Source: Macrostomum hystrix
Lineage: Eukaryota; Animalia; Platyhelminthes
Direction of reading: 5' to 3'
NCBI GenBank assembly: GCA_950097015.1
Contig: CATNEN010000012.1
Span: forward strand, 2,790,001-2,854,000
Length of the DNA stretch: 64,000 nt
Shown here: in pieces, positions 25,483 to 51,297 of the stretch
Numbering within the stretch: position 1 is the stretch's first letter
How the letters are laid out: each line of letters opens with the position of its first letter
Notes under the pieces: model-generated
Seen by the model: only the letters and a program-made list of their open reading frames with translations
Told to the model about the DNA's origin: nothing
Database searches by the model: none
Translations under genes and position numbers: made by a program

Positions 25483-25752
25483 TCACAGCAGGCTGCACTT
25501 AGACTTGCGCCCAGAGCTGCGGCCGCTGGCGCCACTGGCGGCCTCTCTCTTGCGCAATCGACCAAAAAAACTTCGGCCGGCGCTGCCGTTGCGAGAGGCG
25601 GCGCCAACGCCGCCGGCAGCCGCAGCCGCAGCTTCGCTTCGCCGCTCCAGTTTGGCCTTGATCTCCCTGGCCATCAGGGTGAAGGCCTCCTCAATGCCGG
25701 AGCCAGTCTTGGCGCTGCACTCGGCGAAGTGCATTCGATGTTCGCTGGCCAG
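25483..25752 (-). CDS. RAB8: Rab8 coding exon 4 (SAK motif, CAAX)
   Basis: ttgcag|CTG; [41 protein letters not shown]. Confidence 0.95.
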   Translation of the reverse strand: MASEHRMHFAECSAKTGSGIEEAFTLMAREIKAKLERRSEAAAAAAGGVGAASRNGSAGRSFFGRLRKREAASGASGRSSGRKSKCSLL

Positions 25753-27959
25753 CTGCAAGAGGGTCGAGTTTATGAGGCCGCTGTACTGTCTCTACCTGCA
25801 TTGCGTTACGACAGCTAAATCATTTACCACTTCTATCTCTATCCCTTCTATCTCTATCCCTTCTTCCTCTACCCCTTCCTTCTCTATCCCATCCTTCTCT
25901 ATCCCTTCTTCCTCTACCCCTTCCTTCTCTATCCCTTCCTTTGGCCACTTAACTTTACACTGCAGCTATCAGTTAATTAACAGAAAGTGCAAAAGTGGAG
26001 AAGCCATGACCTGTCAATCACCTGATAAGCTAATTTGCCAGGCCTCTTTCTAAAATCCGCTTTTCAAAGCAGGATTACTGTAGATTAAATCGTAGTAAAT
26101 TAAGCTAACACGCAAGGGAAATTCTATCCAAAAACTGTATTTAATGGATCCCAAGGAGAATTAGATATTTCCGTCACGGTTTCTGCGCCCTTAACTAGAA
26201 GCCACGACAATATCTTTTAATATCCCTTTTAGTCCATTATAGATGCTCACATCGTAATTCTTTCTTCCACTCCATATCCGATTCTAGATCCCAATCCAAA
26301 TCCGACTCTAGATCCCAATCCATTTCCGACTCTAGATCCCAACCCACAGATCCCAGCCTTTCACTGACCTTTTCGCCCTGCTCTCTGCTAATGACTCCCT
26401 CACTGGCATTCTAGATCCCAATCCATATCCGATTCTAGATCCCAATCCATATCCGATTCTAGATCCCAATCCATATCCGATTCTAGATCCCAATCCATAT
26501 CCGATTCTAGATCCCAATCCATATCCGATTCTAGATCCCAATCCATATCCGATTCTAGATCCCAATCCATATCCGATTCTAGATCCCAATCCATATCCGA
26601 TTCTAGATCCCAATCCATATCCGATTCTAGATCCCAATCCATATCCGATTCTAGATCCCAATCCATATCCGATTCTAGATCCCAATCCATATCCGATTCT
26701 AGATCCCAATCCATATCCAATTCTAGATCCCAGCCTTTCACTGACCTTTTCGCCCTGCTCTCTGCTAATGACTCTCTCACTGGCAAGGTCTGATTTATTG
26801 GCCAGCAGCATTTTCTCTACATCCACATTGGCATGCTGCGCAACATTGCCAATCCAGTTGCGGATGTTGTCGTAGGACTCAGCAAAGGTGACGTCATAGA
26901 CTAGAAAGACGCCCATGGCGCCGCGGTAATAAGAAGTGGTGATTGTGCGAAACCGCTCCTGTCCTGCTGTGTCCCTAAAGGAACAAATAATTTTACATTT
27001 CTGAGCTTAAAATTTACAACGGCTTAACTGGTTTGTCCATGTAAAAAACAGAACAGGTGACTCACCAGACTTGTAATTTAACACGCTTGCCATCCACAAC
27101 TATTGTGCGAATCTTGAAGTCAATGCCTAAAAATGAATAATTAACTATACACATAATTGAGTTTAGCTTAACCCAGAAAAATTCAAATAAACTTTGTTGC
27201 CTTTAGATCAACCCGTGATACTTAGAGCTTCCCTATTCCATACTTCAAAGAAGTAAACATTTTTAGAGCTAATTTATATGACCCATTGCTTATAGATTTC
27301 GTCTAGTCTAGTCTAGTTTAGGTAGTGCAATTATAATAAATGAAATATAGTGGGGGAATTCGAAATATTATAGTGTTAAACTGCTCTTAAAAAGAAAAGA
27401 ACTCTTAGTATGAAGATAAAAACATGCTTAAAAGCTACATAGCTGCATGGATTTACAAATGGTAGTCTGTTGTCATAGCAGTACAATGTTTATGATGAAT
27501 TTAAAGCCAAGTTATATAAAGTGAAAGACAGACATTAATTTAAAAGACAAATTCTAGTAGTATTCTTGGATATGTTGACTATAACTCTCTCATTAATACA
27601 AGCTTCAATCAGCACTTTCTTTGACATTTAAAACATGCAGGTCATTTCATAATCGTTTTTGCAATTCTTGCTTCCCTTTGATAAAGTAGCAAATAGTAAA
27701 TCCAACTACACTCGACATTTCTATAAAAACTTCCAGTTATAACTTGGCTATTTTATATACACACCATTTTAAGTATATAAAAAGCAAGCAAGGTTTACAT
27801 TTTAATGTATTTTTATCATTTAACTTTCTCACCTATTGTAGCAATGAATGACTGTAGGAAGTTATTCTCAGCAAATCGAAAAATTATACATGATTTGCCA
27901 ACACCACTATCTCCGATCATAAGAAGCTTAAAAAGATATTCGTACTCTTTTGTTGCCAT
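25483..27959 (-). CDS. RAB8: Rab8-family small GTPase, 228 aa, 4 coding exons
   Basis: Exons 27959-27833, 27126-27066, 26974-26746, 25752-25483 with matching phases. [77 protein letters not shown] and YYRGAMG plus a CAAX end are typical of the Rab8/10/13 group. Confidence 0.95.
25830..25940. repeat. Short CT-rich degenerate repeat (ctctatcccttc)
   Basis: Direct reading; about 80 nt from the Rab8 exon 4 acceptor. Confidence 0.7.
26275..26727. repeat. Minisatellite, 24-nt unit ctagatcccaatccatatccgatt, containing a copy of the Rab8 exon 3 end
   Basis: Starts 18 nt into Rab8 intron 3. Confidence 0.96.
26746..26974 (-). CDS. RAB8: Rab8 coding exon 3
   Basis: ctttag|G to AAG|gtcagt; [41 protein letters not shown]. 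Confidence 0.95.
27066..27126 (-). CDS. RAB8: Rab8 coding exon 2
   Basis: ttag|GC to TG|gtgag; [21 protein letters not shown]. Confidence 0.93.
27833..27959 (-). CDS. RAB8: Rab8 coding exon 1 (P-loop)
   Basis: ATG at 27959; [43 protein letters not shown]|gtgag. Absent from the ORF track. Confidence 0.93.
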
Positions 27960-28132
27960 TTCTACAGACACGACAATGATTAAGCGGAAATATTATTTTA
28001 ATTATCTACTGGACAGTACCAGGCTTTAAAAACTTGCCTACTTGCTTCTGATATTTTTCTTCCACTGCTAAAACAAGTGGCTATATTTTCGCTTCGTGAC
28101 AATATACAAATCTATGCAGTCATCACACTCAC

Positions 28133-28790
28133 ACAGTTTACTAATAGTGTAAATAATTCAAAGGTTGGATAGGTTTCTCTTTTTAAAACAAGTCACGTCG
28201 AAGTCACTGACGGCAACGTGTTGTGATGTGCAGCTTTAAGGACGCTTATTAAAGTAGTATAGGCTCCAAAAATACAACTCAATAGAAAAATTTCCGAAAA
28301 ATCAGAAAAAAACTACTAGGTATACAGTTTGATTCAATTTTAACATCAAAAAGCAATGACAAGGTACAAGGCGTTAAGAGTGACGCGAACAGACATTTCA
28401 CAGTAAAAAAAATATTGTGATATCGAAAGTAGGCACCATAAACATTGTTACAGCTGTAAAATTTCAATTTTTAAATACAGAAACAAACTAAAAAACAAGA
28501 ACAAAGTTTTACAAAAAAGGTTTTACGAAAGCTCTTTTCTCTCTACTGCAGCATTTGTTTTACATTGACATTAATTCGAAATATAATATTGGATTTCTTT
28601 TCTGAGAAAAAAATTATTTCCGTTTCAGTTACAGACTATAAATCTACTTTTATTTATCGTAATACAGGCCTGCTTTTTTCTGTTACTTAGGCCTAATGTT
28701 AGTTTAGCCTTTCTGTTATTTCTGGAAACATTGCCGTATCAATTCGACAGTACAAGTTATCCGTGTTACTTTATCTAGCTTGGCGGAAAC
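28133..28790. promoter_or_regulatory. Inferred bidirectional promoter region between Rab8 (-) and PKI/TBC1D10 (+)
   Basis: Genes are divergent. The Rab8 ATG has an acceptor 2 nt upstream (ctgtag|aaATG) and a minus-strand GTGAGT donor at 28132-28127. A plus-strand donor lies at 28811. No TSS evidence. Confidence 0.35.
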
Positions 28791-28810
28791 ATGGCTATGG
28801 CTGACAGCAG
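28791..28810 (+). CDS. Possible upstream coding mini-exon of the PKI-like gene (MAMADS-R)
   Basis: ATG GCT ATG GCT GAC AGC AG|gtaaaa joins in frame to acceptor 31956 (AG|G CAA ATG). Based on splice signals and phase only. Confidence 0.35.
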
Positions 28811-29513
28811 GTAAAATCAATTCATTTTATCAAAATAACTTGCTTCTTCTAAGTTCTATGCTAATTTATGTTATTAGTATGTTATTAATCATGTTAAATA
28901 ATACATCTATACATTATAATAAAGTATTTATGGAAATACATCATTTATTTATCTTAATTTACTAACAATTTTTATGCAATATCTTTCATAGAACTTTTTG
29001 CGGCATGTGTCGTTTCGTTCGTTAAATTATTTAAGTTAAATTATAAGTAGTCCCAACGTCAACTCAGCTATCAGGTTGGGCCGCATTTTCTGCTATATGT
29101 CCTGCATTGTAATGGCCTGCAATTCCTACTGGACAGCCAGGGTGTTGCTGTGCTGGCTGGGTGGCTGCAGGGTGTCTCACTGTCTGTTCGCTACTCCCTA
29201 GCTTTTGGTGCGATGCTAGCCAAGACTTGGCGGTTCATTGGATCTTTACCAACAGAAAGCTGCGCCGACTGGTGGGTGGGGAAAACCGTTGAAAGCTGAG
29301 GGTTAGGTAGGGGAAGGACCATTGTTGAGGTTTAAAATCATTGTTTAAAATGATATGATTGTTTAAAATCATATTTCGAGCCCACAAATTTAAATCTGTC
29401 TTTAAAATAATTTAACGAATGAAACCACACATACGCCCATTTTGCATATAATACACGCAAAATTTCTGGCATAGATTTAGGTTGCAAAATTGCAAAAAGT
29501 GGTATAAAAATAA

Positions 29514-30287
29514 GGAAGTGCTTATTCCCACGGTCCCGTGCCAATATTTTCAATTTTATCCACACGGATCCGTGCCGATAATTTCTGCTTATCCACATGG
29601 CAGCTTGTATGAATATAGGTCTACAACTCATATATGCCGTGCCGTTAATTTCAATTTTATCCACACAGATCTGTGCCGATAATTCTCTGCCTGTCCACAC
29701 GGCAGCTTGTTTTGCCGATAACTTTAAGAACTTAAAGCACATATTTTACAGGAACTATGTAGCAATTTTCATGTACTATATACAACTGGTCATACATGTT
29801 TCCAGAACCTGCAGTTACCTGTAGTAGGGCGTCTTTTAATTACGAGCAATGCACACGTTAAATTTCGAATAATCGTTAATTTCAAATAATCGTTAATTTC
29901 GAATAATATGTAACGTTGCTAACAATTGCATGAAGAATCGCGCTGACATTTGTATTGCACACGCGCTTGAAATATGATATGATGCACATGCGCAAATGAT
30001 AACTACTGACTTGTTACCGTACGAAAATAAGGTTTCAGAAACTCTACGAAAGCATGTTAACTAGTTCCGCGCTTTCCTCTGCGAATCTTTACAATTGTGT
30101 GTCCTTCGGACTTAGGCGTTAAATTCTTGAGAGTTAAAACAGTCTCCCAATGCTTTTGCTGGACAATTTTCTTAGTTGTAGACCTATTCAGACAAGCTGC
30201 CGTGGGGATAAGCAGAAAATTATCGGCACGGATCCGTGTGGATAAAATTGAAATTATCGGCACGGGACCGTGGGAATAAGCTCTGCC
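29514..30287. mobile_element. Non-autonomous PIF/Harbinger (Tourist-like) MITE, 774 bp
   Basis: Imperfect terminal inverted repeats of about 115 bp (29514-29628 vs 30174-30287), starting GG, flanked by TAA on both sides (29511-13, 30288-90). A second copy of the subterminal motif lies at 29640-29710. No transposase ORF. Confidence 0.8.
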
Positions 30288-31959
30288 TAAAAATAATTTT
30301 TTGGTGCATTGACAAAATTAGTGCATTGGCAAAAATACACTACATTGGCTGAAATCAGCATATGTAGGCCTAGTGTATGTAGCTGATTTAGGTCTGTGAA
30401 TACATGAAATACACCAGCATACTGGTCAGTAAAATTTTAAATCTCAGGTATAACTCTAGCATTATTTTATAATTTCTAGATGTCATCTTTGGCATGTGTA
30501 AGTGTATGATGTATTATCAAAATTTCAGTAACAAAAAGTATTATATCACCTTTCAGTGAGGCCACCTTTCAGTAAAGCATGTAGGCTGTGCTTATTATTA
30601 CTTGCTCACTACTGGCTCACTGCAGTAAATTGTGTATCATAATATTTTCTAGACCAAATGTGCTTATAATTTTCACAAATTTTCACTAATCTTTTGTTTA
30701 AATCAAGTTTTAGAGTATTAATCATCTAATTGCAACATGTCTTAAAAAACAGATCGCCTTTATTTGAACATACAGCTATAAAATAAGTGCATTTTTAACT
30801 TTCACAGACAATTAAAGATAAACAAATTGGTTAAGGTTCAAGAAATCAACAATAATTATTGACCTAACCCAGAATCTCAGATCTATATTAAAATGTATTT
30901 TAGACATTTAGACATAAACAAGTGTTATTTATTTGTCATAGCTGATTAACATTGTTTCCTTGGATCCTATTAATTTTGTAAAGACAATTTTTTAATTGAG
31001 TTAAACAAATATTTCATAAATTCTGCCCTATATTCTTGATTTATATAAACACTGCAATGTATTAAAGCAGACAGACAGCAAAAGACCATGATAGGACCTT
31101 AATGGATCACAAAGGTACTGCAACAAAAACTTAAAAATATATTTTGTTATATTTATTCTAACAATGCCTACCTGAGTCAAATAAAATCTGTATTGAAACA
31201 TTTTTTCATATATTGCATAGTAGACTATTATAAAAATTCTAGATAAACATTTGAACATTTATTTTTAGCATCACTAAAGGTAGTAGCTTGGCCCCTGGGC
31301 TTACAGGGCACATATTACAATCAAGAACATTGTGTCCACATCAATTTTGACTAAATATTAATGAAGTCCTCTATACATTTAGAGTTTTACTGGATTGTGG
31401 TTGTTGTGGTAAATTTTAGTTTTATACATGAGTCCATAGGAATATATAATCATACTTTATATTTAAGTATAAACATTTATATATTCAGCATTAGGCTATG
31501 ACATAAAACATAAGAAACTGTTACTATAATTATGTAATATATTTAAACCAAAATTGATTTTGGAGTTGTAAAGACAAGATGTCATGGTGAATTTATAATC
31601 TAGAAATGTATGTAAATGGCATATAGTATCTATATTGTGCACAAGTGATATATGCAAACTACTTTACTAACCAAGTGTACTCTCATTCTCTCAAGAATTA
31701 AAACTAGTTTAATTACACTTGTAATGTTTTTAACCAAAACTGTTTAATTTCTGAAAAGTAAATTAGTAAACAAAAAGCTTAGCTTGATCTACTGGATGAG
31801 TAAATTATAGACAAATTCAGGCAAATCTAGATAGATAGAAAATAGAAACGGCCCATATTTTTTGTGGACAAATTTTTTGTTTCCACAAAATAATTAATTT
31901 GTTTAGTGTGTGTTCTACTTATAATTATATAATAAAATTCTAATCCTGACTGAAGGCAA

Positions 31960-32226
31960 ATGTCCGACAACTGTTCTGTGCTGTCAAATGACGACCTGAC
32001 ACTGGAAGAGTTTCAATGCTCCGGCCGGGTTGGTCGCCGATTCGCCCTAGCCGGAGCCGGCCCAACCGCTGGCATTGTTGTGGAATCCGGATCCGGCTCT
32101 GGACAGGGCGACTGCGGACCGCTACTATTTAAAGAGGTCACCAGCAAGATGGCCAGACTTGGCGGCGGAGTCGGCGCCAGCGGTAGCGGCGGCAGCGTTC
32201 AAGGTGGCGTTGCTCGCCCTAATTAA
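31960..32226 (+). CDS. PKI: cAMP-dependent protein kinase inhibitor (PKI)-like small protein, 88 aa
   Basis: FQCSGRVGRRFAL aligns without gaps to the PKI-alpha pseudosubstrate FIASGRTGRRNAI (F at P-11, R at P-6, RR at P-3/-2, Ala at P0, hydrophobic P+1). Downstream VTSKMARL resembles the PKI NES LALKLAGL. GC-rich island in AT-rich DNA, preceded by ctaat..gaag| acceptor (31954-55). Confidence 0.85.
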   Translation: MSDNCSVLSNDDLTLEEFQCSGRVGRRFALAGAGPTAGIVVESGSGSGQGDCGPLLFKEVTSKMARLGGGVGASGSGGSVQGGVARPN

Positions 32227-33194
32227 TAAATCAATTGATTGAAATGCAATGCACTTTAAGCAGCATTGAATTAACATGGAATCGGTTTTTGTTTTAATTC
32301 GCCTTGCGATCTGTAAGTGTTGCTCTTTTTTAACTATTAAAAGTCTTTTTATCAGTCTTCTATCTGTGTTGAGTATTTCTGTTGATTGATTTTTGCGTCT
32401 AAGAAAACGTTGGCCGATGTGATAGTCGCTTGTCCATTAAATATTGCATTGCTTTTTTCATTTTAAAACAGCTATTTTTATGACTAAACATGGCCTCATT
32501 TTGTAGATGTTGTCACAGTCTTCTAGTTTGCCTTGCTAGATTGGTGGAACCGTTTTCAATGAGATACTTTCATAGTGTCTATAACAGTTTATGGTGTCCA
32601 CTGGCACTGACCCTTCAGTAGGTCCATTGTACTACCACTCTAGTCATTGTGCTTATTTAGGACAAATGTTTTGTACACCAACAGTCCATAGACTAATGGA
32701 CATGTCTGGACATGCCAAACAATGCCATGTCTGGTACATTTCACTGTGACATCTCCTTGATGTAGCGATGGTGCCTGAAGGACAATGTACTTGCCCCCTA
32801 ATGCTTCAATTAGTCCAAGAATGAAGCAGCGAGGATGTGATACAGATTGTTCTCATTTATATATTTCCGATATGATTAGGTGTGCAAAATAGGATTGTAT
32901 CTCATGCAGCTAAAACGATGTGCACGCCCGGATTCAGACAGTCAATGTCCAGTCAGATACTTGCATTCCCTTGTCTTTGCCTTCAGTTGAGCTGCTTCTG
33001 TTATTTAAGGACTGAGTCCCTTTGATCAAATACACGTTGAAAATCGTTTTTTTAATTAAAACTTGTTGGCTTGACTTATGATTATATTTATCTATTAATA
33101 TCAGATAAACTATTATTGAATTATTATCTTAATAGTGTTGCTTCGTTTAACCCACGTGGACATATTTTTTACCCTTTTTATTCCATATTATCTC

Positions 33195-33725
33195 ACCAAT
33201 TTGCTTTCAGTCTCTAATCTCATCTACCAGTTGCTTTCAGTCTCTAATCTCATCTCTATTATTTGCTTTCAGTCTCTAATCTCATCTCTCTACCATTTCT
33301 TGCTGCATCTAATCTCATCTCTCTACCATTTGCCTCAAGTCTCTAATCTCATCTCTCCACCATTTGCTTTCAGTCTCTAATCTCATCTCTCTACATTTGC
33401 TTTCAGTCTCTAATCTCATCTCTCCACCATTTGCTTTCAGTCTCTAACCTCATCTCTCTACCATTTCTTGCTGCATCTAATCTCATCTCTCTACCATTTG
33501 CCTCAAGTCTCTAATCTCATCTCTCCACCATTTGCTTTCAGTCTCTAATCTCATCTCTCCACCATTTGCTTTCAGTCTCTAATCTCATCTCTCCACCATT
33601 TGCTTTCAGTCTCTAATCTCATCTCTCCACCATTTGCTTTCAGTCTCTAACCTCATCTCTCTAACAGTTGCTTTCAGTCTCTAATCTCATCTCTCCACCA
33701 TTTACTTTCAGCCTCTAATCTCATT
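33195..33725. repeat. Minisatellite, 34-nt unit ctctaatctcatctctccaccatttgctttcagt
   Basis: Direct reading. Confidence 0.93.
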
Positions 33726-33928
33726 TGTCCCTACTCTCTCAGTCTCACAAACATCTCAAAACTGACACTAAATTGTTCCATTGTCCCTAAGTTAAATTTC
33801 AGTGAAAAGTCTGTTGGATGTATATTTACTAGATATAGATACTGGGAAACTTGGACTAACGGTTCTTCCCAAGTCATTTTTTACGCCCATGGCAACTAAA
33901 TCTTATCTCCCCGCCACATAATCTTCAG

Positions 33929-34288
33929 GGTGACTTCTCTCTGCCCCAGCACGTTGGCGCCTCCGCCGAGCCCGTGCCAGACCGCTACGGCTTCTACACC
34001 GACGCCTCCTCGATGCCGCCGCCCGACACTGGCGGCTCCGGCGGCGGCCGGCGTCGCCACGACGCGCTAAAAATAATTCGCCGCCGAGAGAAGAAATGGC
34101 TGCAGATGTTCAATAATTGGGATCGAATTGTGGCCAAAGATTTTCCTAAATTGCGCGAGCGCTGCAGAAAGGGCATCCCGGACTCGGTGCGGGCTAGGGC
34201 CTGGTACTACCTGTGCGGCGCCTGCTTCATGCAGCGTGACCAGCCCGACCTTTACCAGATATGCCAAAGCAAGCAGGCCAGCGAGAAG
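33929..34288 (+). CDS. TBC1D10: TBC1D10-like first identified coding exon
   Basis: cttcag|GGT GAC (phase 0) to AAG|gtgagc; in-frame stop upstream at 33857. Confidence 0.85.
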
Positions 34289-37200
34289 GTGAGCTAACTT
34301 TATTGATTCAGTAAATTCGGAAAATATTCACCTGCATTCTCTTTAAAATTAATTTTCTCTATCGGCATCTGCTCTCACATTCGTATCTATTTTTTACCTT
34401 TATTAGACTGTCTAACTTCTTATCACACCTGAATCACAATATCTAATCTCACCTGTGCCACAATATCTAATCTCACCTGTATCATAATATCTAATCTCAC
34501 CTGTATCATAATGTCTAATCTCACCTGTATCATAATATCTAATCTCACCTGTATCATAATGTCTCATCTCACCTGTATCACAATGTCTCATCTCACCTGT
34601 ATCACAATGTCTCATCTCACCTGTATCACAATATCTAATCTCACCTGTGCCACAATATCTAATCGCACCTGTATCACAATATCTCATCTCACCTGTATCA
34701 CAATATCTAATCTCACCTGTATCATAATATCTAATCGCACCTGTATCACAATATCTAATCGCACCTGTATCACAATATCTAATCTCACCTGTATCATAAT
34801 GTTTAATCTCACCTGTATCATAATGTTTAATCTCACCTGTATCACAATATCTAATCTCACCTGTATCACAATGTCTCATCTCACCTGTATCACAATATCT
34901 AATCTCACCTGTATCACAATGTCTCATCTCACCTGTATCACAATATCTAATCTCACCTGTATCACAATATCTAATCTCACCTGTAACATAATGTCTAATC
35001 TCACCTGTATCATAATATCTAATCTCACCTGTATCATGATATCTAATCTCACCTGTATCATAATGTTTAATCTCACCTGTATCATAATGTCTAATCTCAC
35101 CCTGTATCACAATATCTAATCTCACCTGTATCATAATGTTTAATCTCACCTGTATCACAATATCTAATCTCACCTGTATCACAATGTCTCATCTCACCTG
35201 TATCACAATATCTAATCTCACCTGTACCACAATATCTAATCTCACATATATCACGATATCTAATCTTACCCTGTATCAAATTCTCTAATGTAAAGTAAAT
35301 TAGAATCCCAGTTTCTGCCTAATTAGAAATGATGGATTATTAATGTGTCAAACTAATTCGTTAGATAGAAAAGTTTATGTTGAAAAGATTCCCTTAGTTT
35401 GAGGTAAATTAGAGCGAGTTAAATGCAAGTTGATTGCTGTGATTTCTCTGTTTTTGTCCTATCCAATGTGTTTCGATATTAGCCGCAGAAAAAGCATAAA
35501 AGACGCATCAGCTATTAAACTTTTATTCTGAGTTCATTCTATTAGAAACACGGGCGCATGTATGTAGCAGCAGCAGCAGCAGCCCAGTAATTTTATTTTA
35601 TATCAGTTGCTAAGGGCAGCCAGCTAATCTGCATTAAAGTCAACCGCCCTCTCTCTGTAGCCCATCATGCATACCCTTTCCAAAGCCTGTGCGTCATAGA
35701 TTGTGTTTTTTTGTACGGAAATACCGGACTAACGTGTACTTTTAGATCGATTCTTAATGCTACATCTCTCTGATCAACTGTTTGCTAATCGTGTCATGTG
35801 TGTTTAGATTAACTTTGGCACTGTTTTCATATCTTTCTTATCTCTTAGGCTCTGATCCCATCCCCCATCCCGTCTGCTCTTATTCTCTAATCTCATCTCT
35901 CCCATCCCGTCTGCTCTTATTCTCTAATCTCATCTCCCCCATCCCGTCTGCTCTTATTCTCTAATCTCATCTCTCCCATCCCGTCTGCTCTTACTCTCTA
36001 ATCTCATCTCTCCCATCCCGTCTGCTCTTACTCTCTAATCTCATCTCTCCCATCCCGTCTGCTCTTATTCTCTAATCTCATCTCTCCCATCCCGTCTGCT
36101 CTTATTCTCTAATCTCATCTCTCCCATCCCGTCTGCTCTTATTCTCTAATCTCATCTCCCCCATCCCGTCTGCTCTTATTCTCTAATCTCATCTCTCCCA
36201 TCCCGTCTGCTCTTACTCTCTAATCTCATCTCTCCCATCCCGTCTGCTCTTATTCTCTAATCTCATCTCTCCCATCCCGTCTGCTCTTATTCTCTAATCT
36301 CATCTCTCCCATCCCGTCTGCTCTTATTCTCTAATCTCATCTCTCCCATCCCGTCTGCTCTTATTCTCTAATCTCATCTCTCCCATCCCGTCTGCTCTTA
36401 TTCTCTAATCTCATCTCTCCCATCCAGTCTGCTCTTATTCTCTAATCTCATCTCTCCCATCCCGTCTGCTCTTATTTTCTAATCTCATCTCTCCCATCCT
36501 GTCTGCTCTTATTCTCTAATCTCATCTCTGCCATCCCGTCTGCTCTTATTCTCTAATCTCATCTCCCCCATCCCGTCTGCTCTTATTCTCTAATCTCATC
36601 TCTCCCATCCCGTCTGCTCTTATTCTCTAATCTCATCTCTCCCATCCCGTCTGCTCTTATTCTCTAATCTCATCTCTCCCATCCAGTCTGCTCTTATTCT
36701 CTAATCTCATCTCTCCCATCCCGTCTGCTCTTATTCTCTAATCTCATCTCTCCCATCCCGTCTGCTCTTTTTCTCTAATCTCATCTCTCCCATCCAGTCT
36801 GCACTTATTCTCTAATCTCATCTCTCCCATCCCGTCTGCTCTTATTCTCTAATCTCATCTCCCCCCATCCCGTCTGCTCTTATTCTCTAATCTCATCTCT
36901 CCCATCCCGTCTGCTCTTATTCTCTAATCTCATCTCCCCCATCCCGTCTGCTCTTATTCTCTAATCTCATCTCCCCCATCCCGTCTGCTCTTATTCTCTA
37001 ATCTCATCTCTCCCATCCCGTCTGCTCTTATTTTCTAATCTCATCTCTCCCATCCCGTCTGCTCTTATTCTTTAATCTCATCTCTGCCATCCCGTCTGCT
37101 CTTATTCTCTAATCTCATCTCTCCCATCCTAGGTCTTGGTAGATCTGGGTGCGGATTCGAACTTTTGAACCTTCTCGTCCAAGATTGTTGTCGCTTTTGC

Positions 37201-40200
37201 TTTTGCAAAGCTTGCTTAGATGCCATCTGTTCCAACAGTGATTCCCTGATCAATGCGCCTTGTTCTGAAAGCTTTTAAGACAATTGTCACCTATTTTTTC
37301 TGGCGCGCAATTTCGTCAATGCATTGCATTTCTTTAACGCCCTCTTTTTTTGGCAGCCCCAAAAGACGGATCGGGAAATCGCAAACTCTTTGTAGTATTC
37401 GCCCGTCCCCATTCCCCAAATTTCCCATCGCCGAATTTCCGGTCTATCCCAAAAATCCTTCCTTAACCCTCCCTCCGATGGAATCAGCAGCGAAACGGCC
37501 AAGGGATGGGAACATTAGGAAGGCCCGAACGCCGCATCCTGCACACACGATATGTAGTCAACCTGCGAGCGTCTAGGAGGTTGACCGCGATGGGATGAAG
37601 TACCCAGAGTGCCCATGGCGCATCAGCATGCACTTGCCCTGGCCTCCCCTCCAGAATCACTCGATCCTCTGACGCGCTTAGCCTTCGGAAAACTCTGGCT
37701 TCAAGAGGCCGTCCGGATTAACGCCACTTCTGTGACATTAATCCCACTTACCAGTCTTTCCACTGCCCTGCCATTACACACACACCCTGCCATTACACAC
37801 ACACCCTGCCATTACATACACACCCTGCCATTACATGCACACCCTGCCATTACACACACACCCTGCCATTACATACACACCCTGCCATTACATACACACC
37901 CTGCCATTACATACACACCCTGCCATTACATACACACCCTGCCATTACACACACACCCTGCCATTACATACACACCCTGCCATTACATACACACCCTGCC
38001 ATTATATGCACACCCTGCCATTACATACACACCCTGCCATTACATACACACCCTGCCATTACATACACACCCTGCCATTACACACACACCCTGCCATTAC
38101 ATACACACCCTGCCATTATATACACACCCTGCCATTACATACACACCCTGCCATTACATACACACCCTGCCATTACATACACACCCTGCCATTACATGCA
38201 CACCCTGCCATTACATACACACCCTGCCATTACATACACACCCTGCCATTGCATACACACCCTGCCATTACATACACACCCTGCCATTATATACACACCC
38301 TGCCATTACATACACACCCTGCCATTACATACACACCCTGCCATTACATACACACCCTGCCATTATATACACACCCTGCCATTACATACACACCCTGCCA
38401 TTACATACACACCCTGCCATTACATACACACCCTGCCATTGCATACACACCCTACCATTACATACACACCCTGCCATTATGTACACACCCTGCCATTAAA
38501 TACACACCCTGCCATTATATACACACCCTGCCATTATATACATGGCCTACTAGTCTATGTACTCGTATAATGCCATTATATACGAGCCTAGTAATCTATC
38601 CACCAGTCTCCCGTTTTATAACTGTCGTGTCTTCTATAAAGCTGATAGCTCGTAGTACCTTTATTTGTTTAGAATTTTTTTCTTGTGATTAGTGTGTCAT
38701 TCTACTTCTAGTAGCCTACTTACAATATCAAGATTTTGCTCGAAATAAAACAATTCATCCGATTTTTCGTGTTGATTTTTTTAGTAAAATCAAGCCTAAA
38801 TCTACAGTAATTCTTTCTGAAAATCTATCCGAATCTACAGTAATACTTTCTGAAAATCTATCCGAATCTACAGTAATACTTTCTGAAAATCTATCCGAAT
38901 CTACAGTAATTCTTTCTGAAAATCTATTCCGAATCTACAGTAATTCTTTCTGAAAATCTACCCGAATCTACAGTAATTCTTTCTGAAAATCTATCCGAAT
39001 CTACAGTAATTCTTTCTGAAAATCTATCCGAATCTACAGTAATTCTTTCCGAAAATCTATCCGAATCTACAGTAATTCTTTCTGAAAATCTATTCCGAAT
39101 CTACAGTAATTCTTTCTGAAAATCTATTCCGAATCTACAGTAATTCTTTCTGAAAATCTACCCGAATCTACAGCAATTCTTTCTGAAAATCTATTCCGAA
39201 TCTACAGTAATTCTTTCTGAAAATCTACCCGAATCTACAGTAATACTTTCTGAAAATCTATTCCGAATCTACAGTTATTCTTTCTGAAAATCTATCCGAA
39301 TCTACAGTAATTCTTTCCGAAAATCTATCCGAATCTACAGTAATTCTTTCTGAAAATCTACCCGAATCTACAGCAATTCTTTCTGAAAATCTATTCCGAA
39401 TCTACAGTAATTCTTTCTGAAAATCTACCTGAATCTACAGCAATTCTTTCTGAAAATCTATTCCGAATCTACAGTAATTCTTTCTGAAAATCTACCTGAA
39501 TCTACAGCAATTCTTTCTGAAAATCTATTCCGAATCTACAGTAATTCTTTCTGAAAATCTACCCGAATCTACAGCAATTCTTTCTGAAAATCTATTCCGA
39601 ATCTACAGCAATTCTTTCTGAAAATCTATTCCGAATCTACAGCAATTCTTTCTGAAAATCTATTCCGAATCTACAGTAATTCTTTTTGAAAATCTACCCG
39701 AATCTACAGTAATTCTTTCCGAAAATCTATCCGAATCTACAGTAATTCTTTCCGAAAATCTATCCGAATCTACAGTAATTCTTTCCGAAAATCTATCCGA
39801 ATCTACAGTAATTCTTTCTGAAAATCTATTCCGAATCTACAGTAGTTCCTTCCGAAAATCTATCCGAATCTACAGTAATTCCTTCCGAAAATCTATCCGA
39901 ATCTACAGTAATTCCTTCCGAAAATCTATCCGAATCTACAGTAATTCCTTCCGAAAATCTATCCGAATCTACTCATTCATCATCTTTAGGTGCTGGATGA
40001 CATCGACAAAGACCTGAGCCGGCAGTTCCCGCATCACGAGCTGTTTGTACAGGACCAGGGCCACGGCCAGCAGGCTTTGCGCCGCCTATTGCAAGCCTAC
40101 GCCGGTTGCCACCCGGAAGTTGGCTATTGCCAGGCAATGGCACCGCTAGCTGGCGCTTTGCTGCTGCACATGCCCGAGCTAGACGCATTTTACACAATGA

Positions 40201-41793
40201 CCAGTCTGTTTGACACTTATATGTGCGACTATTTCCGACCCGGCCTGGAGACTGTCCAAGTCGATGGTCAAATTCTCTACGGCCTGTTGAAACGGCTCAG
40301 CCCGGATGTTTACAGGCATCTGGTCAAATTCAAGGTCGAGCCGTTGCACTTTATGGTTGACTGGTTCATGTGCCTGTTTGTTAGAAACCTGCCCTGGCCC
40401 ACACTACTCAGGGTTTGGGATGTCTACTTTTGCGAAGGTGAGTCAGTTGGTCCTTTAGGTCTGGTGGAAATCAATAAAATATCGAGCCAGATGCGTCAGT
40501 GATAGAAAGTAACGAGCCAGATGCGTCAGTGATAGAAAGTAACGAGCCAGATGCGTCAGTGATAGAAAGTAACGAGCCAGATGCGTCAGTGATAGAAAGT
40601 AACGAGCCAGATGCGCCAGTGATAGAAAGTAACGAGCCAGATGCGTCAGTGATATAAAGTAACGGGTCAGATGCGCCAGTGATAGAAAGTAACGGGTCAG
40701 ATGCGCCAGTGATAGAAAGTAACGGGTCAGATGCGCCAGTGATAGAAAGTAACGGGTCAGATGCGTCAGTGCTAGAAAGTAACGGGTCAGATGCGCCAGT
40801 GATAGAAAGTAACGGGTCAGATGCGCCAGTGATAGAAAGTAACGGGTCAGATGCGTCAGTGATAGAAAGTAACGGGTCAGATGCGCAAGTGATAGAAAGT
40901 AACGAGCCAGATGCGCCAGTGATAGAAAGTAACGGGTCAGATGCGTCAGTGATAGAAAGTAACGGGTCAGATGCGTCAGTGATTGAAAGTAACGGGTCAG
41001 ATGGGTCAGTGCTAGAAAGTAACGGGTCAGATGGGTCAGTGCTAGAAAGTAACGGGTCAGATGGGTCAGTGCTAGAAAGTAACGGGTCAGATGGGTTAGT
41101 GATGGACTGAGTCAGATGTATAAGTGATTAAAAGTAACGAGCCGGATAGCTCATATTTTGAACATATCGAGTCAATAAATCAGTGGTAAAGCCTAAAAAA
41201 TTTTTGGATCAGCTGTACATTGTAATGGGTCCGGTAAGTTAGTGGTGGAAAGTAACGAGACAGGTGATTTGGCGGTATAAAAGTAACGAACGAAACAAAT
41301 TAACGATTTCTACTTTACGTCGATAGAAATCGACGAATTGAATGGATCAGTGGTAGAAAGTAACGAAATAAATATATCTGCGGTAGAAAGTAACGAAATA
41401 AATATATCTGCGGTAGAAAGTAACGAAATAAATATATCTGCGGTAGGAAGTTACAAATTAAATAGATAAGCAACTACGCTCGTAGTTAGGTGTCTGTCCG
41501 CCCGAATTATCGCAGGTGTGAAGATCATCTTCCGGGTGGCCATCGCCCTCCTGAACGGCGTCCTAGGCACTTCGCAGCAGCGCCGCCACCTCAGGTCGTT
41601 CGAGGACACGCTAGACTGCCTGCGCAACCTGCCGGGCAAGGTGACGGAGGCCTCCAGCCTGCTGCCAGCCGCCCTGCTGCTGGAATTGTCGGCTAAAGAT
41701 TTTGAGCAAGAGCACGACAAGCAGTTGAAGAAGTTCAATCAGAGGAAGCAACTGCGGCAGCAGATGCAGCACGATACTGGTGCGGCTGTCTGA
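33929..41793 (+). CDS. TBC1D10: TBC1D10 / EPI64-like Rab GTPase-activating protein, 3 exons, no in-frame ATG at the 5' end
   Basis: Exons 33929-34288, 39990-40437, 41516-41793 with matching phases. DRYGF, REKKWLQMF..W, LRERCRKGIPDSVRARAWYYLCG, IDKDLSRQFP (Arg finger), GYCQAMAP (Gln finger), WFMCLF..LPW..LRVWDVYFCEG-VKIIFRVAIALL. The RQFP-HE-F..GHGQQ-L pattern is characteristic of TBC1D10. Confidence 0.93.
34425..35275. repeat. Minisatellite, 24-nt unit atatctaatctcacctgtatcaca
   Basis: Direct reading. Confidence 0.96.
35855..37130. repeat. Minisatellite, 37-nt unit ctctaatctcatctctcccatcccgtctgctcttatt
   Basis: Direct reading. Confidence 0.96.
37765..38545. repeat. Minisatellite, 19-nt unit ccctgccattacatacaca
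   Basis: Direct reading. Confidence 0.96.
38800..39972. repeat. Minisatellite, 33/34-nt unit gaatctacagtaattctttctgaaaatctatcc
   Basis: Ends about 17 nt before the TBC acceptor at 39989. Confidence 0.96.
39990..40437 (+). CDS. TBC1D10: TBC1D10-like catalytic exon
   Basis: ctttag|GTG to G|gtgagt; IxxDxxR and YxQ motifs intact. Confidence 0.95.
40478..41100. repeat. Minisatellite, 30-nt unit gatagaaagtaacgggtcagatgcgccagt
   Basis: Starts about 40 nt after the TBC donor at 40438. Confidence 0.95.
41350..41450. repeat. Three copies of 30-nt cggtagaaagtaacgaaataaatatatctg
   Basis: Shares tagaaagtaacg with the previous array. Confidence 0.85.
41516..41793 (+). CDS. TBC1D10: TBC1D10-like last coding exon
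   Basis: tcgcag|GT; GVKIIFRVAIALLNGVLG..HDTGAAV*. Confidence 0.92.
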
Positions 41794-42036
41794 TTGATTC
41801 TTGGGAAAACCTGTTCCGTAGTCTTTAGTGATCCCAATATTACTCGAGAGCCTTCCCCAAGTCAGAATTGTGTGATTAATTCTCTGTTTTGTATTTCCTT
41901 AGTTTTGCTGTTCCCCGCTGCTGAATTGTTCGACTTAATCAGAATTTTTTAAAGCTGTTTTCGTTTGCTGCTTCACTTGGCCGTGTGTTTTGGGTGCTTT
42001 AAACTGTTAGTACCAGCGAGAACTGCAGCTGGGTCA

Positions 42037-42563
42037 ACCTCAAATACAGACTCACCAGCCTCAAATACAGACTCACCAGCCTCAAATACAGACTCACCAG
42101 CCTCAAATACAGACTCACCAGCCTCAAATACAGACTCACCAGCCTCAAATACAGACTCACCAGCCTCGAATACAGACTCACCAACCTCGAATACAGACTC
42201 ACCAACCTCAAATACAGACTCACCAGCCTCAAATACAGACTCACCAGCCTCAAATACAGACTCACCAGCCTCAAATACAGACTCACCAGCCTCAAATACA
42301 GACTCACCAGCCTCAAATACAGACTCACCAGCCTCAAATACAGACTCACCAGCCTCAAATACAGACTCACCAGCCTCAAATACAGACTCACCAACCTCGA
42401 ATACAGACTCACCAACCTCAAATACAGACTCACCAGCCTCAAATACAGACTCACCAGCCTCAAATACAGACTCACCAGCCTCAAATACAGACTCACCAGC
42501 CTCAAATACAGACTCACCAGCCTCAAATACAGACTCACCAGCCTCAAATACAGACTCACCAAC
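42037..42563. repeat. Minisatellite, 21-nt unit cctcaaatacagactcaccag
   Basis: Direct reading. Confidence 0.96.
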
Positions 42564-42939
42564 ATGCTAGTATGCAGTAGTCAGAGGTGCTATGGTGTTA
42601 GTGTTTATTGTGAATTTATTTAAACCGCTAAGCCAATCAATGGGTTGTTTCTCGCGCTTATGAATTTTAATCGTGGCTATTATATACTAGTTTTGTTTTA
42701 AAAAAGCTTTCGACTGTTGTGTTAGGTTTCTAGACTTTTTGCTACTGTAAGTTTTTTAAGTACTCTGTCCACATCTCTCATGACCGAATCTTTTATATTG
42801 CACTGCTCATTTACTGCTCTCCATGCAATAAGATAATGTATGTAAATTATTAGCTTTCAGTTTGCTTGTTAATTCTCGTAGATTCTTTTGTTAAACTGTG
42901 GCTAGTCTAATGCTAGTCTTTTGATTTGGTTCAGTGTGT

Positions 42940-45900
42940 CTCCCTATTCTTCTCCTTCTCCCATTCTACCCCTTCTCCCTATCCTTCTCCTTCTCCCATT
43001 CTACCCCTTCTCCCTATCCTTCTCCTTCTCCCATTCTACCCCTTCTCCCTATCCTTCTCCTTCTCCCATTCTACCCCTTCTCCCTATCCTTCTCCTTCTC
43101 CCATTCTACCCCTTCTCCCTATCCTTCTCCTTCTCCCATTCTACCCCTTCTCTCTATTCTTCTCCTTCTCCCATTCTACCCCTTCTCCCTATTCTTCTCC
43201 TTCTCCCATTCTACCCCTTCTCCCTATTCTTCTCCTTCTCCCATTCTACCCCTTCTCCCTATCCTTCTCCTTCTCCCATTCTACCCCTTCTCCCTATCCT
43301 TCTCCTTCTCCCATTCTACCCCTTCTCCCTATCCTTCTCCTTCTCCCATTCTACCCCTTCTCTCTATTATTCTCCTTCTCCCATTCTACCCCTTCTCCCT
43401 ATCCTTCTCCTTCTCCCATTCTACCCCTTCTCTCTATTATTCTCCTTCTCCCATTCTACCCCTTCTCCCTATTATTCTCCTTCTCCCATTCTACCCCTTC
43501 TCCCTATCCTTCTCCTTCTCCCATTCTACCCCTTCTCCCTATCCTTCTCCTTCTCCCATTCTACCCCTTCTCCCTATCCTTCTCCTTCTCCCATTCTACC
43601 CCTTCTCTCTATTATTCTCCTTCTCCCATTCTACCCCTTCTCCCTATTATTCTCCTTCTCCCATTCTACCCCTTCTCCCTATCCTTCTCCTTCTCCCATT
43701 CTACCCCTTCTCCCTATCCTTCTCCTTCTCCCATTCTACCCCTTCTCCCTATCCTTCTCCTTCTCCCATTCTACCCCTTCTCCCTATTATTCTCCTTCTC
43801 CCATTCTACCCCTTCTCCCTATCCTTCTCCTTCTCCCATTCTACCCCTTCTCCCTATTCTTCTCCTTCTCCCATTTTACCCCTTCTCCCTATTCTTCTCC
43901 TTCTCCCATTCTACCCCTTCTCCCTATTATTCTCCTTCTCCCATTCTACCCCTTCTCCCTATCCTTCTCCTTCTCCCATTCTACCCCTTCTCCCTATCCT
44001 TCTCCTTCTCCCATTCTACCCCTTCTCCCTATCCTTCTCCTTCTCCCATTCTACCCCTTCTCCCTATTATTCTCCTTCTCCCATTCTACCCCTTCTCCCT
44101 ATCCTTCTCCTTCTCCCATTCTACCCCTTCTCCCTATCCTTCTCCTTCTCCCATTCTACCCCTTCTCCCTATCCTTCTCCTTCTCCCATTCTACCCCTTC
44201 TCCCTATCCTTCTCCTTCTCCCATTCTACCCCTTCTCCCTATTCTTCTCCTTCTCCCATTCTACCCCTTCTCCCTATTATTCTCCTTCTCCCATTCTACC
44301 CCTTCTCCCTATTCTTCTCCTTCTCCCATTCTACCCCTTCTTCCTATTCTTCTCCTTCTCCCATTCTACCCCTTCTCCCTATCCTTCTCCTTCTCCCATT
44401 CTACCCCTTCTCCCTATCCTTCTCCTTCTCCCATTCTACCCCTTCTCCCTATCCTTCTCCTTCTCCCATTCTACCCCTTCTCCCTATTCTTCTCCTTCTC
44501 CCATTCTACCCCTTCTCCCTATCCTTCTCCTTCTCCCATTCTACCCCTTCTCCATATTATTCTCCTTCTCCCATTCTACCCCTTCTCCCTATCCTTCTCC
44601 TTCTCCCATTCTACCCCTTCTCCCTATCCTTCTCCTTCTCCCATTCTACCCCTTCTCCCTATTCTTCTCCTTCTCCCATTCTACCCCTTCTCCCTATCCT
44701 TCTCCTTCTCCCATTCTACCCCTTCTCCCTATCCTTCTCCTTCTCCCATTCTACCCCTTCTCCCTATTATTCTCCTTCTCCCATTCTACCCCTTCTCCCT
44801 ATCCTTCTCCTTCTCCCATTCTACCCCTTCTCCCTATCCTTCTCCTTCTCCCATTCTACCCCTTCTCCCTATCCTTCTCCTTCTCCCATTCTACCCCTTC
44901 TCCCTATCCTTCTCCTTCTCCCATTCTACCCCTTCTCCCTATCCTTCTCCTTCTCCCATTCTACCCCTTCTCCCTATCCTTCTCCTTCTCCCATTCTACC
45001 CCTTCTCCCTATTATTCTCCTTCTCCCATTCTACCCCTTCTCCCTATCCTTCTCCTTCTCCCATTCTACCCCTTCTCCCTATTATTCTCCTTCTCCCATT
45101 CTACCCCTTCTCCCTATCCTTCTCCTTCTCCCATTCTACCCCTTCTCCCTATTCTTCTCCTTCTCCCATTTTACCCCTTCTCCCTATTCTTCTCCTTCTC
45201 CCATTCTACCCCTTCTCCCTATTATTCTCCTTCTCCCATTCTACCCCTTCTCCCTATCCTTCTCCTTCTCCCATTCTACCCCTTCTCCCTATCCTTCTCC
45301 TTCTCCCATTCTACCCCTTCTCCCTATCCTTCTCCTTCTCCCATTCTACCCCTTCTCCCTATTATTCTCCTTCTCCCATTCTACCCCTTCTCCCTATCCT
45401 TCTCCTTCTCCCATTCTACCCCTTCTCCCTATCCTTCTCCTTCTCCCATTCTACCCCTTCTCCCTATCCTTCTCCTTCTCCCATTCTACCCCTTCTCCCT
45501 ATCCTTCTCCTTCTCCCATTCTACCCCTTCTCCCTATTATTCTCCTTCTCCCATTCTACCCCTTCTCCCTATTCTTCTCCTTCTCCCATTCTACCCCTTC
45601 TCCCTATCCTTCTCCTTCTCCCATTCTACCCCTTCTCCCTATCCTTCTCCTTCTCCCATTCTACCCCTTCTCCCTATCCTTCTCCTTCTCCCATTCTACC
45701 CCTTCTCCCTATTCTTCTCCTTCTCCCATTCTACCCCTTCTTCCTATTCTTCTCCTTCTCCCATTCTACCCCTTCTCCCTATTCTTCTCCTTCTCCCATT
45801 CTACCCCTTCTCTCTATTCTTCTCCTCCCATTCTACCCCTTCTCCCTATCCTTCTCCTTCTCCCATTCTACCCCTTCTCCCTATTCTTCTCCTTCTCCCA

Positions 45901-46190
45901 TTCTACCCCTTCTCCCTATCCTTCTCCTTCTCCCATTCTACCCCTTCTCCCTATCCTTCTCCTTCTCCCATTCTACCCCTTCTCCCTATCCTTCTCCTTC
46001 TCCCATTCTACCCCTTCTCCCTATTCTTCTCCTTCTCCCATTCTACCCCTTCTTCCTATTCTTCTCCTTCTCCCATTCTACCCCTTCTCCCTATTCTTCT
46101 CCTTCTCCCATTCTACCCCTTCTCTCTATTCTTCTCCTCCCATTCTACCCCTTCTCCCTATCCTTCTCCTTATCCCATTCTACCCCTTCT
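42940..46190. repeat. Pyrimidine-rich minisatellite, 35-nt unit ccttctccttctcccattctaccccttctccctat, about 90 copies
   Basis: Source of the three 1100-aa ORFs. Confidence 0.97.
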
Positions 46191-49645: not shown

Positions 49646-51297
49646 GCCCCTATCTGGTCAACGGAGTGGCTGATGTTAAACATATCATTAGATAGGCATA
49701 GGATTTGATCCTAGCAATAAAACTTCATTGATGGTCGCATTTTGGAATTATTTATTAAATTTGGCACCTCTCAGCACCTGCTGTAAAAGTGTCGCCCGTC
49801 AAATTAATTGGCCCTGCTGCTCAATGTCGGCATTCTATGGGACGTTTGATCTGTTCCCGATCGGAATAACTCAAAAACAAAATTATTTTTGGTCTCAGGA
49901 GTTTAGTTAAAGTATTGGTTTTCAAATTTTAGCAGGAAATTGGCCTGCTCAAAAAGAGTTTGCTGGCAAGGGAAAAATATTTGCGCTTTCTTAGAAAACC
50001 AGCAAGTGCTCCACTTTTTTCTCTTTTTTCTTTAATGGAAAAGGGAAAAGTTTCGATTGGACCGCAGCCTTCCCACTGACGCTGCCAACGAAGCTGTTGA
50101 CGAGAAAAAGTCAAAACAGTTTCTTTATTCTCTGCCTCCTTTCCCATCGGCAAGCCCTTGACATCGCCCCGCTACTGTAGACTGGTTGCCGGCGAAAAGA
50201 CTAAAGAAATAGGAAACCTTTTTTCTGTGGATGGGAAAACAAAAAAATCCTGTCCCAACTTTGGGAGAAAACATTTGTAGCTTTCCCCCCGCCTGGCGTG
50301 AGCTGAGTATAGGACTTGCCGCTTGAGCTGCTAGAGTATTCCGTCTGATGCGAGCTCCTAATTGTACCATCCTGCCTCACAACAGTTTCATGTTGTCTGT
50401 CGTTTCTAGCGCTAAGACACCGCTAAGTAGGACTACCAAGCCATTTTGCCGCCCGTTTTTATACCAAGGGGGGATTTCAGCCCTGAAAAAAAATTTGGCA
50501 GCTTCCGAATGCTAGCAGCTTTGGGTGGTGACTGATTGGTTGACAGACTAATCAGGCGATGGTGTCCTCTGGTCGAGCTGCGCCTAGTATTTCGGCTTGA
50601 TCAGTGAAATTGGAGAAATTCGCGTCAGGGTGTCCATAGTGGCCTATTTTTTCACCTGTTGTAGCCCTTGAAGGTCCAGCAAATCCGTCTAGATAAAGGT
50701 AGGTGACCACCGAAGACGGAGATGATGCAGGCACATTCGGGTGACATGCTGATAAATGTTTGAAGGCCTGGCAAGGCCGCACTGAGGCACAGTGCTAATT
50801 CGTGTCTGTATGAAATGGTGTACTGAAAACCGCAGTAGAAATGGCTTGGTAGTCCTACTGTGAAGGATCTCAATGCTAAAACGGTACTCAGAAATGCCCC
50901 AAAAAGTGTTCGAATGCAACGTACTTGCTGTCCCTACTTTATTTGTCACACAAATCGTTTGGCGCATCGTAGATGAAGCGTGTGTGAGAAACTGCAAATT
51001 TGAATGCAACTCAAGGTGCAAATCTTTATGGATTTGCAACCTAATAGGCTAGAGTCGTATAGGCTTTTTGAACAATGCGACGTCGGCGGTGGCTGCGGCG
51101 CCGGCGGCGGCGGCGGCTTTGTTTCATCGGTTTAATTAACCTTTCCCTTACCCCGTCTTCCCAGTCCTAATTAAGCGCGGCTTTTTTTAAAGAAAATAAA
51201 GTAGGATAGAGAGTGACTGGAAGATACGCTCGTAATGCATCGATAATCGAAAGCCAATTTAAATCGGGTAAGAAATTCAGGCAACGCAGAAAGAGTT

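Follow-up and report, generated by a model that had tools for sequence, protein, structure and literature searches.

In the 64,000 nucleotides (nt) of the Macrostomum hystrix genome studied here (hereafter, the window), the gene for a RabGAP opens with a coding exon (exon 1, 33929–34288, plus strand) in which translation of the genomic DNA revealed no in-frame start codon before the conserved motif DRYGF. Assembled RNA contigs demonstrated that a spliced leader (SL), whose only ATG is formed by its last three bases, is joined to this exon at 33929 by trans-splicing. We consider it highly probable that the whole explanation is a start-less RabGAP gene whose outron is removed by SL trans-splicing and whose start codon would be the AUG of the leader.

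Exon 1 of the RabGAP gene and its leader joint

Exon 1 comprises 120 codons and opens in phase 0, and its extent was defined by exact RNA-contig cover and by its translation. The frame across the acceptor reads ...HNLQ|GDFSLPQHVGASAEPVPDRYGFYTDASSM..., with GGT GAC opening at 33929 directly after cataatcttcag (33917–33928, plus strand), the trans-splice acceptor at which the SL-bearing RNA contigs are joined. The CTTCAG of this acceptor fits [T/C]TNCAG, a motif enriched at trans-splice sites in Macrostomum lignano (PMC8629364). Translation of 33857–34288 placed an in-frame TAA 5' of the acceptor (33857–33859, plus strand), and a run of T residues lies between the two at approximately 33877. 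The DRYGF codons occupy 33980–33994 and are followed by the first genomic in-frame ATG (34013–34015, plus strand), which is 28 codons into exon 1. The exon ends at 34288 with the donor AAG|gtgagc, and the RNA contigs confirmed both of its boundaries.

An earlier reading of the window made from the letters alone (hereafter, the sequence-only reading) had described a TBC frame that was open from a phase-0 acceptor at 33928/33929 and included DRYGF, an in-frame stop at 33857, and a first in-frame ATG at 34013 after DRYGF. All of these held on re-translation. It had also offered 33929 or 33950 as the site of leader addition. Position 33929 was the one used in the RNA contigs, whereas 33950 is in phase 0 but was not used by them. 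The acceptors at 33950 (ccccag|CAC) and 33971 (gccgag|CCC), which lie 21 and 42 nt into exon 1, are both in phase 0, and neither was used by the RNA contigs.

The genome has one further copy of RabGAP exon 1, on contig 38, and the two copies are 53% identical. The DRYGF motif is invariant between these paralogues, while the rest of the N-terminus is poorly conserved. The contig 38 exon starts at a phase-0 acceptor (position 28096265), tattacag|GCG GAA GCT TTG..., and likewise lacks an in-frame ATG ahead of DRYGF; its earliest one is inside the motif WLDMLNNW. With the SL attached, this paralogue would be predicted to read MAEALLSQKGSNH...DRYGF. The translation of exon 1 on its own had no match in Pfam. 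The exon with DRYGF could be aligned with a solved chain of human USP6NL (PDB 9ltp; E = 2.7e-5), in which the corresponding residues are VTDRFGF (residue 46). We take DRYGF to be part of the RabGAP protein because it is both invariant in the paralogue and aligned with DRFGF of USP6NL. Four variants were seen in other runs, three of them synonymous third-position changes (including one in the D codon of DRYGF) and the fourth a change of Ile to Leu.

The RNA comparison was made with four sequencing runs (of six found), all in the form of assembled contigs, and was confined to 33730–34410, a region selected because it excludes the tandem arrays at 33191–33724 and 34418–35289. Contigs from runs X3 (1,382 nt, 0 mismatches) and X5 (403 nt), which belong to the same study, both covered exactly 33928–34291. 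Immediately before 33928 each had the 5' overhang CTGCGAAGACTCAATTTATTGCAT, the g at 33928 being the last G of the leader. The 3' overhang of each, CTGGATGACATCGAC..., is identical to the first bases of exon 2, which begins 5.7 kb further on at 39990. These contigs represent spliced RNA rather than DNA, as their 3' sides continue into exon 2, and they demonstrate SL trans-splicing at 33929 in two runs. The search of RNA data for leader sequence joined at 33929, which the sequence-only reading had recommended, was therefore successful.

The SL was found on both contigs extending as far as the exon 1 5' terminus, and no other upstream sequence was present on any contig. Run X1, from another study, confirmed only the joint between exons 1 and 2. 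A sediment metatranscriptome, run X2, contributed a 200-nt contig with 98.5% identity to exon 1 (33934–34133 of the window), which presumably came from a Macrostomum in that sample. An exact scan of metagenome contigs for joints of the SL with the exons of the RabGAP gene and its paralogue found none.

The overhang CTGCGAAGACTCAATTTATTGCAT and the following G correspond to the 3'-terminal 25 nt of the M. lignano SL, CGGTCTCTTACTGCGAAGACTCAATTTATTGCATG, which has 35 nt. At least 28 exact copies of this 25-mer were found in the genome, most of them spaced approximately 11.6–11.7 kb apart on contigs 15, 17, and 42. Nine copies were read further, eight from the arrays of contigs 15 and 17 and a solitary one from contig 1, and all run on as ...TTGCATG|GTAAGACACC..., with the donor GTAAG. 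The 110-nt SL RNA unit folds into three hairpins (z = -3.0), the last two of which are separated by the Sm-like AUAUUUUUAG. Judged by their ATG|GTAAG junctions, these nine copies are SL RNA genes. The M. lignano SL RNA gene likewise has three hairpins, an Sm-like site, and a GTAAG donor, so that the two species agree in these features as well as in the last 25 nt of the leader and the acceptor motif (Ustyantsev & Berezikov 2021, PMC8629364). The premise of the sequence-only reading, that the organism was a flatworm with an AUG-terminated SL, was borne out by the match to the Macrostomum leader and by these SL RNA genes.

Four other copies of the SL (C3:9792961, C7:8556414, C7:8561402, and C7:9274918) run into unrelated sequence instead of GTAAG, and look like retrocopies of SL-trans-spliced mRNAs. 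They have approximately 10 further bases in common with the SL RNA genes 5' of the published 35-nt SL (gcc[g/a]taaagaCGGTCTC...). The extension of these GTAAG-less copies by approximately 10 matching bases upstream suggests that the real leader is longer than 35 nt.

Choice of start codon on the RabGAP mRNA

Joining the SL to 33929 gives ATG GGT GAC TTC..., which is translated as MGDFSLPQHVGASAEPVPDRYGFYTDASSM... and is in frame with the RabGAP open reading frame (ORF). We propose that the RabGAP gene is transcribed with an outron, whose transcription would begin either from a promoter belonging to this gene or from that of a PKI-like gene lying upstream, and that SL trans-splicing would remove this outron at 33928/33929. 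At the start of the mature mRNA would then stand the SL, with a published length of 35 nt, and GGU GAC would come directly after its terminal AUG. Scanning ribosomes would be predicted to start at the SL AUG and produce MGDFSLPQ...DRYGF..., with the N-terminal peptide MGDFSLPQHVGASAEPVPDR. Initiation there is expected because the SL has no other AUG, and because this one precedes all others on the mRNA and is in frame. In addition, since there is no genomic start before DRYGF and the SL AUG is in frame, the start codon of this gene would depend on trans-splicing.

Such use of a leader AUG has a precedent in Schistosoma mansoni, in which the 3'-terminal AUG of the SL is used as the initiator methionine (Cheng, Cohen, Ndegwa & Davis 2006, J Biol Chem 281:733), according to the accounts given in PMC9851317 and PMC12582326. 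The same accounts put the share of trans-spliced S. mansoni cDNAs with an in-frame SL AUG at 28% and state that more than 40 cDNAs need it. The M. hystrix genome paper also marks the final ATG of the SL as a translation start codon (PMC10468722). The RabGAP gene resembles the Schistosoma cases in that the SL ends in AUG and is in frame with an ORF that has no start of its own before conserved residues. It differs from them in that the animal is a free-living macrostomorphan and not a trematode, the gene is another one, and initiation is deduced. With this precedent, and under the scanning model, initiation at the SL AUG would be the simplest reading of the RabGAP mRNA. Thus, of the proposal in the sequence-only reading that an SL AUG supplies the RabGAP start codon, the joint at 33929 and the reading frame are now supported by RNA contigs, and the use of that AUG by ribosomes is a step that we still infer.

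Several points weigh against this explanation. The SL joint was seen in assembled contigs from two runs of one study, as opposed to raw reads, and has no replicate from a second study. Furthermore, the context of the SL AUG is only moderate, with U at -3 and G at +4, because of which leaky scanning to 34013 and synthesis of a shorter protein are possible. Finally, the contigs would be compatible with a cis-spliced upstream exon in a minor isoform.

The leaky-scanning point can be taken further, to a model in which SL addition takes place at 33929 and yet the main protein begins at 34013 or later, with the SL AUG skipped or of minor use. The U at -3 makes the SL AUG weak at that position, and the AUG at 34013 is the next one on the mRNA and is in frame. 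However, a protein started there would lose DRYGF, a motif that both the paralogue and USP6NL conserve, and in the paralogue the next AUG falls inside the conserved WLDMLNNW, so that the truncation would be deeper still. The first-AUG rule applies with the 32-nt leader, and the Schistosoma precedent is one of SL-AUG use. Based on the loss of DRYGF, the placement of the AUG in the paralogue, the first-AUG rule, and the Schistosoma precedent, we rejected 34013 as the main start and regard it as improbable.

The compatibility of the contigs with an additional isoform likewise raises the question of whether the main isoform could instead begin with an ATG-bearing coding exon cis-spliced from upstream, with the SL form being minor. 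Nothing was found that speaks for this model, and the donors considered in the sequence-only reading (28791, 32276, and 32722) are out of phase or weak. Where contigs extend to the beginning of exon 1, both have the SL there and none has other sequence, and the contig 38 paralogue is start-less in the same way. On account of the SL at the exon 1 5' ends of both contigs, a main isoform with such an exon was rejected, and we judge it to be very improbable.

Returning to initiation at the SL AUG, the donation of a start codon by the SL is already an established flatworm habit, SL trans-splicing in Macrostomum has been well documented, and the RabGAP gene is one more such gene. It is a clean and checkable example of a start-less gene in a free-living flatworm and opens no new mechanism. 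The published studies of M. lignano (PMC8629364) and of M. hystrix and Macrostomum cliftonense (PMC10468722) presented genome-wide counts rather than examining individual genes for a donated start codon. What the present analysis adds is modest, namely that both old paralogues are without a start codon and that they belong to a duplicated block of Rab, PKI-like, and RabGAP genes. Since both old paralogues have the same start-less build, the reliance of translation on the SL seems to have been stable over long times rather than accidental, and this shared build bears on why flatworm SLs keep a terminal AUG. There is also a practical consequence, as gene finders that require a genomic ATG would truncate the RabGAP at 34013 or miss exon 1, and annotation of Macrostomum genes therefore needs the SL AUG to be added.

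The duplicated block and the operon question

The PKI-like gene is an ORF of 88 residues upstream of the RabGAP gene on the same strand (31960–32229, plus strand; coding to 32226 and ending in a double stop), whose translation includes the pseudosubstrate-like GRVGRRFALAG. Beyond it lies a divergent gene for a Ras/Rab-family GTPase (25486–27992, minus strand), called Rab8 in the sequence-only reading, for which the translations of two exons matched Pfam Ras (PF00071) with E values of 5e-26 and 5e-10. The Pfam PKI family (PF02827), of which the pseudosubstrate RRNA[IL] is a feature, had no match to the PKI-like ORF of the window, and the ORF's paralogue on contig 38 had a sub-threshold match in the pseudosubstrate region (E = 0.086; 13.6 bits versus a cut-off of 25). 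The motif GRRFA[LI]AG is kept between the two, and the name PKI is plausible for the 88-residue ORF. A search with the PKI-like protein sequence found no contigs encoding it. An AAG acceptor is present at 31955/31956; if it were trans-spliced, the AUG of the leader would lie 4 nt ahead of the PKI ATG in another frame and would open an upstream ORF of 12 codons, MANVRQLFCAVK*, overlapping the PKI start.

On contig 38, the PKI-like ORF (51% identical to that of the window) is 6.2 kb upstream of the RabGAP gene on the same strand, and beyond it is a divergent Ras/Rab-family gene that matches the one at 25486–27992 (minus strand) of the window. A block of three genes, with a Rab GTPase gene on one strand and the PKI-like and then the RabGAP gene on the other, is thus present twice in the genome (contig 38:28094000–28108500), with 45–70% protein identity between copies. 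A Rab GTPase and a RabGAP are neighbours in both. Other genes of the window had no matches in the 96 kb of contig 38 that were compared, the remaining hits being repeats. An interspersed repeat of approximately 555 bp is located between the PKI-like and RabGAP genes of contig 38 (L019:5085–5640), and a related piece occurs in the window at approximately 50327–51048. Candidate copies of this repeat with 90–95% identity number at least 1,800 across the genome, and its size resembles that of a short interspersed element (SINE) or a miniature inverted-repeat transposable element (MITE).

The sequence-only reading had also proposed that the PKI-like and RabGAP genes form an operon, for which it cited a same-strand distance of about 1.7 kb from the PKI stop and a U-rich run at 33877. 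Both observations were accurate, in that the distance from the PKI stop to the RabGAP acceptor is 1,699 nt and the T-run was seen. The intervening DNA consists of a single-copy, AT-rich spacer (32230–33190, plus strand; 36% GC), which had only a self-match in the genome, and a tandem array, identified by Tandem Repeats Finder, in which a 34-bp unit occurs 16 times (33191–33724, plus strand). No gene was predicted between the PKI-like and RabGAP genes on either strand, and a search of 27000–42000 against Rfam gave no matches. Pattern counting placed an AATAAA over the PKI stop codons (32225–32230, plus strand) and ATTAAA at 32336, 32436, and 33055. Depending on which candidate poly(A) signal is used, the repeat-adjusted gap between the two genes would be between approximately 320 and approximately 1,150 nt.

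In a two-gene operon, the PKI-like and RabGAP genes would have one promoter and SL addition at 33929 would free the RabGAP mRNA, which would add to, rather than replace, the start-codon explanation above. The two genes are same-strand neighbours with no predicted gene on either strand of the interval and no Rfam match there, and SL trans-splicing acts on the downstream one. Their order and orientation are kept in the contig 38 block, although the three-gene block may have been copied as one unit, which would explain the kept order. Spacing can be read both ways. If the ATTAAA at 33055 were the poly(A) signal, the repeat-adjusted gap of approximately 320 nt would be under the cut-off for M. lignano operons, which is 1 kb between transcript ends after removal of repeats (PMC8629364). 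However, the mode in M. lignano is approximately 100 nt (PMC8629364), as compared to 1,699 nt from stop to acceptor here, or 1,165 nt, the rest being single-copy, without the 534-nt tandem array. This places the PKI–RabGAP spacing at or beyond the M. lignano cut-off. The gap on contig 38 is longer, at 6,218 nt, and still approximately 1.7 kb after subtraction of 3,930 nt of tandem repeat and the interspersed repeat of approximately 555 nt.

Approximately 60% of genes with SL trans-splicing in M. lignano are outside operons (PMC8629364). In addition, none of the four runs had an RNA contig on 33730–33913, which is weak evidence because contigs drop rare precursors. In view of the absence of read-through RNA in that region and a spacing far over the mode of approximately 100 nt and near the 1-kb cut-off, the proposed operon is not supported so far, and we regard it as possible but doubtful. 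A broader scenario, in which an old Rab/PKI-like/RabGAP block was retained by selection, with a PKI–RabGAP operon having long repeat-filled spacers and a RabGAP strictly dependent on the SL AUG since before the duplication, is in our view unlikely.

RabGAP gene body and surrounding repeats

Downstream of exon 1 is intron 1 (34289–39989, plus strand), which is 5.7 kb in length, consists mostly of tandem-repeat arrays, and whose end was defined by the match of the RNA contig 3' ends to the start of exon 2. Exon 2 (39990–40437, plus strand) encodes the core of the TBC domain, with IDKDLSR (arginine finger) and GYCQ (glutamine finger), and matched Pfam RabGAP-TBC (PF00566) with an E value of 4.4e-46. 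Exon 3 (41516–41793, plus strand) extends to a TGA at 41791; its acceptor, tcgcag|GT, completes FCEG-VKIIFRVA, and its match to the paralogue is 67%. The TBC domain of the predicted protein, with its IxxDxxR arginine finger and YxQ glutamine finger, has the features of the RabGAP-TBC family.

Assignment to the TBC1D10 subfamily is plausible in view of the N-terminal motif and of human TBC1D10A, the match actually tested being that to USP6NL. Similar to the TBC1D10/USP6NL RabGAPs, the Macrostomum protein has a TBC domain with arginine and glutamine fingers that is preceded by D-R-[YF]-G-F and then by RRExKW and NNW. It differs from them in being short, with approximately 363 residues predicted if the TGA at 41791 is used and only 18 residues between the methionine and DRYGF. 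A homologue search with exon 1, restricted by a length window, found one fragment of 112 residues that was 61% identical and had no N-terminus, and a protein atlas returned generic RabGAP-TBC clusters only.

Exons in the window are GC-rich (approximately 60%) and are set within AT-rich, repeat-filled DNA. The RabGAP introns and the DNA downstream (34418–46000) are largely composed of tandem arrays with units of 19–37 bp, extending up to at least 3 kb each and having a strong skew of C over G. The array at 42939–46000 has 87 copies of a 35-bp unit.

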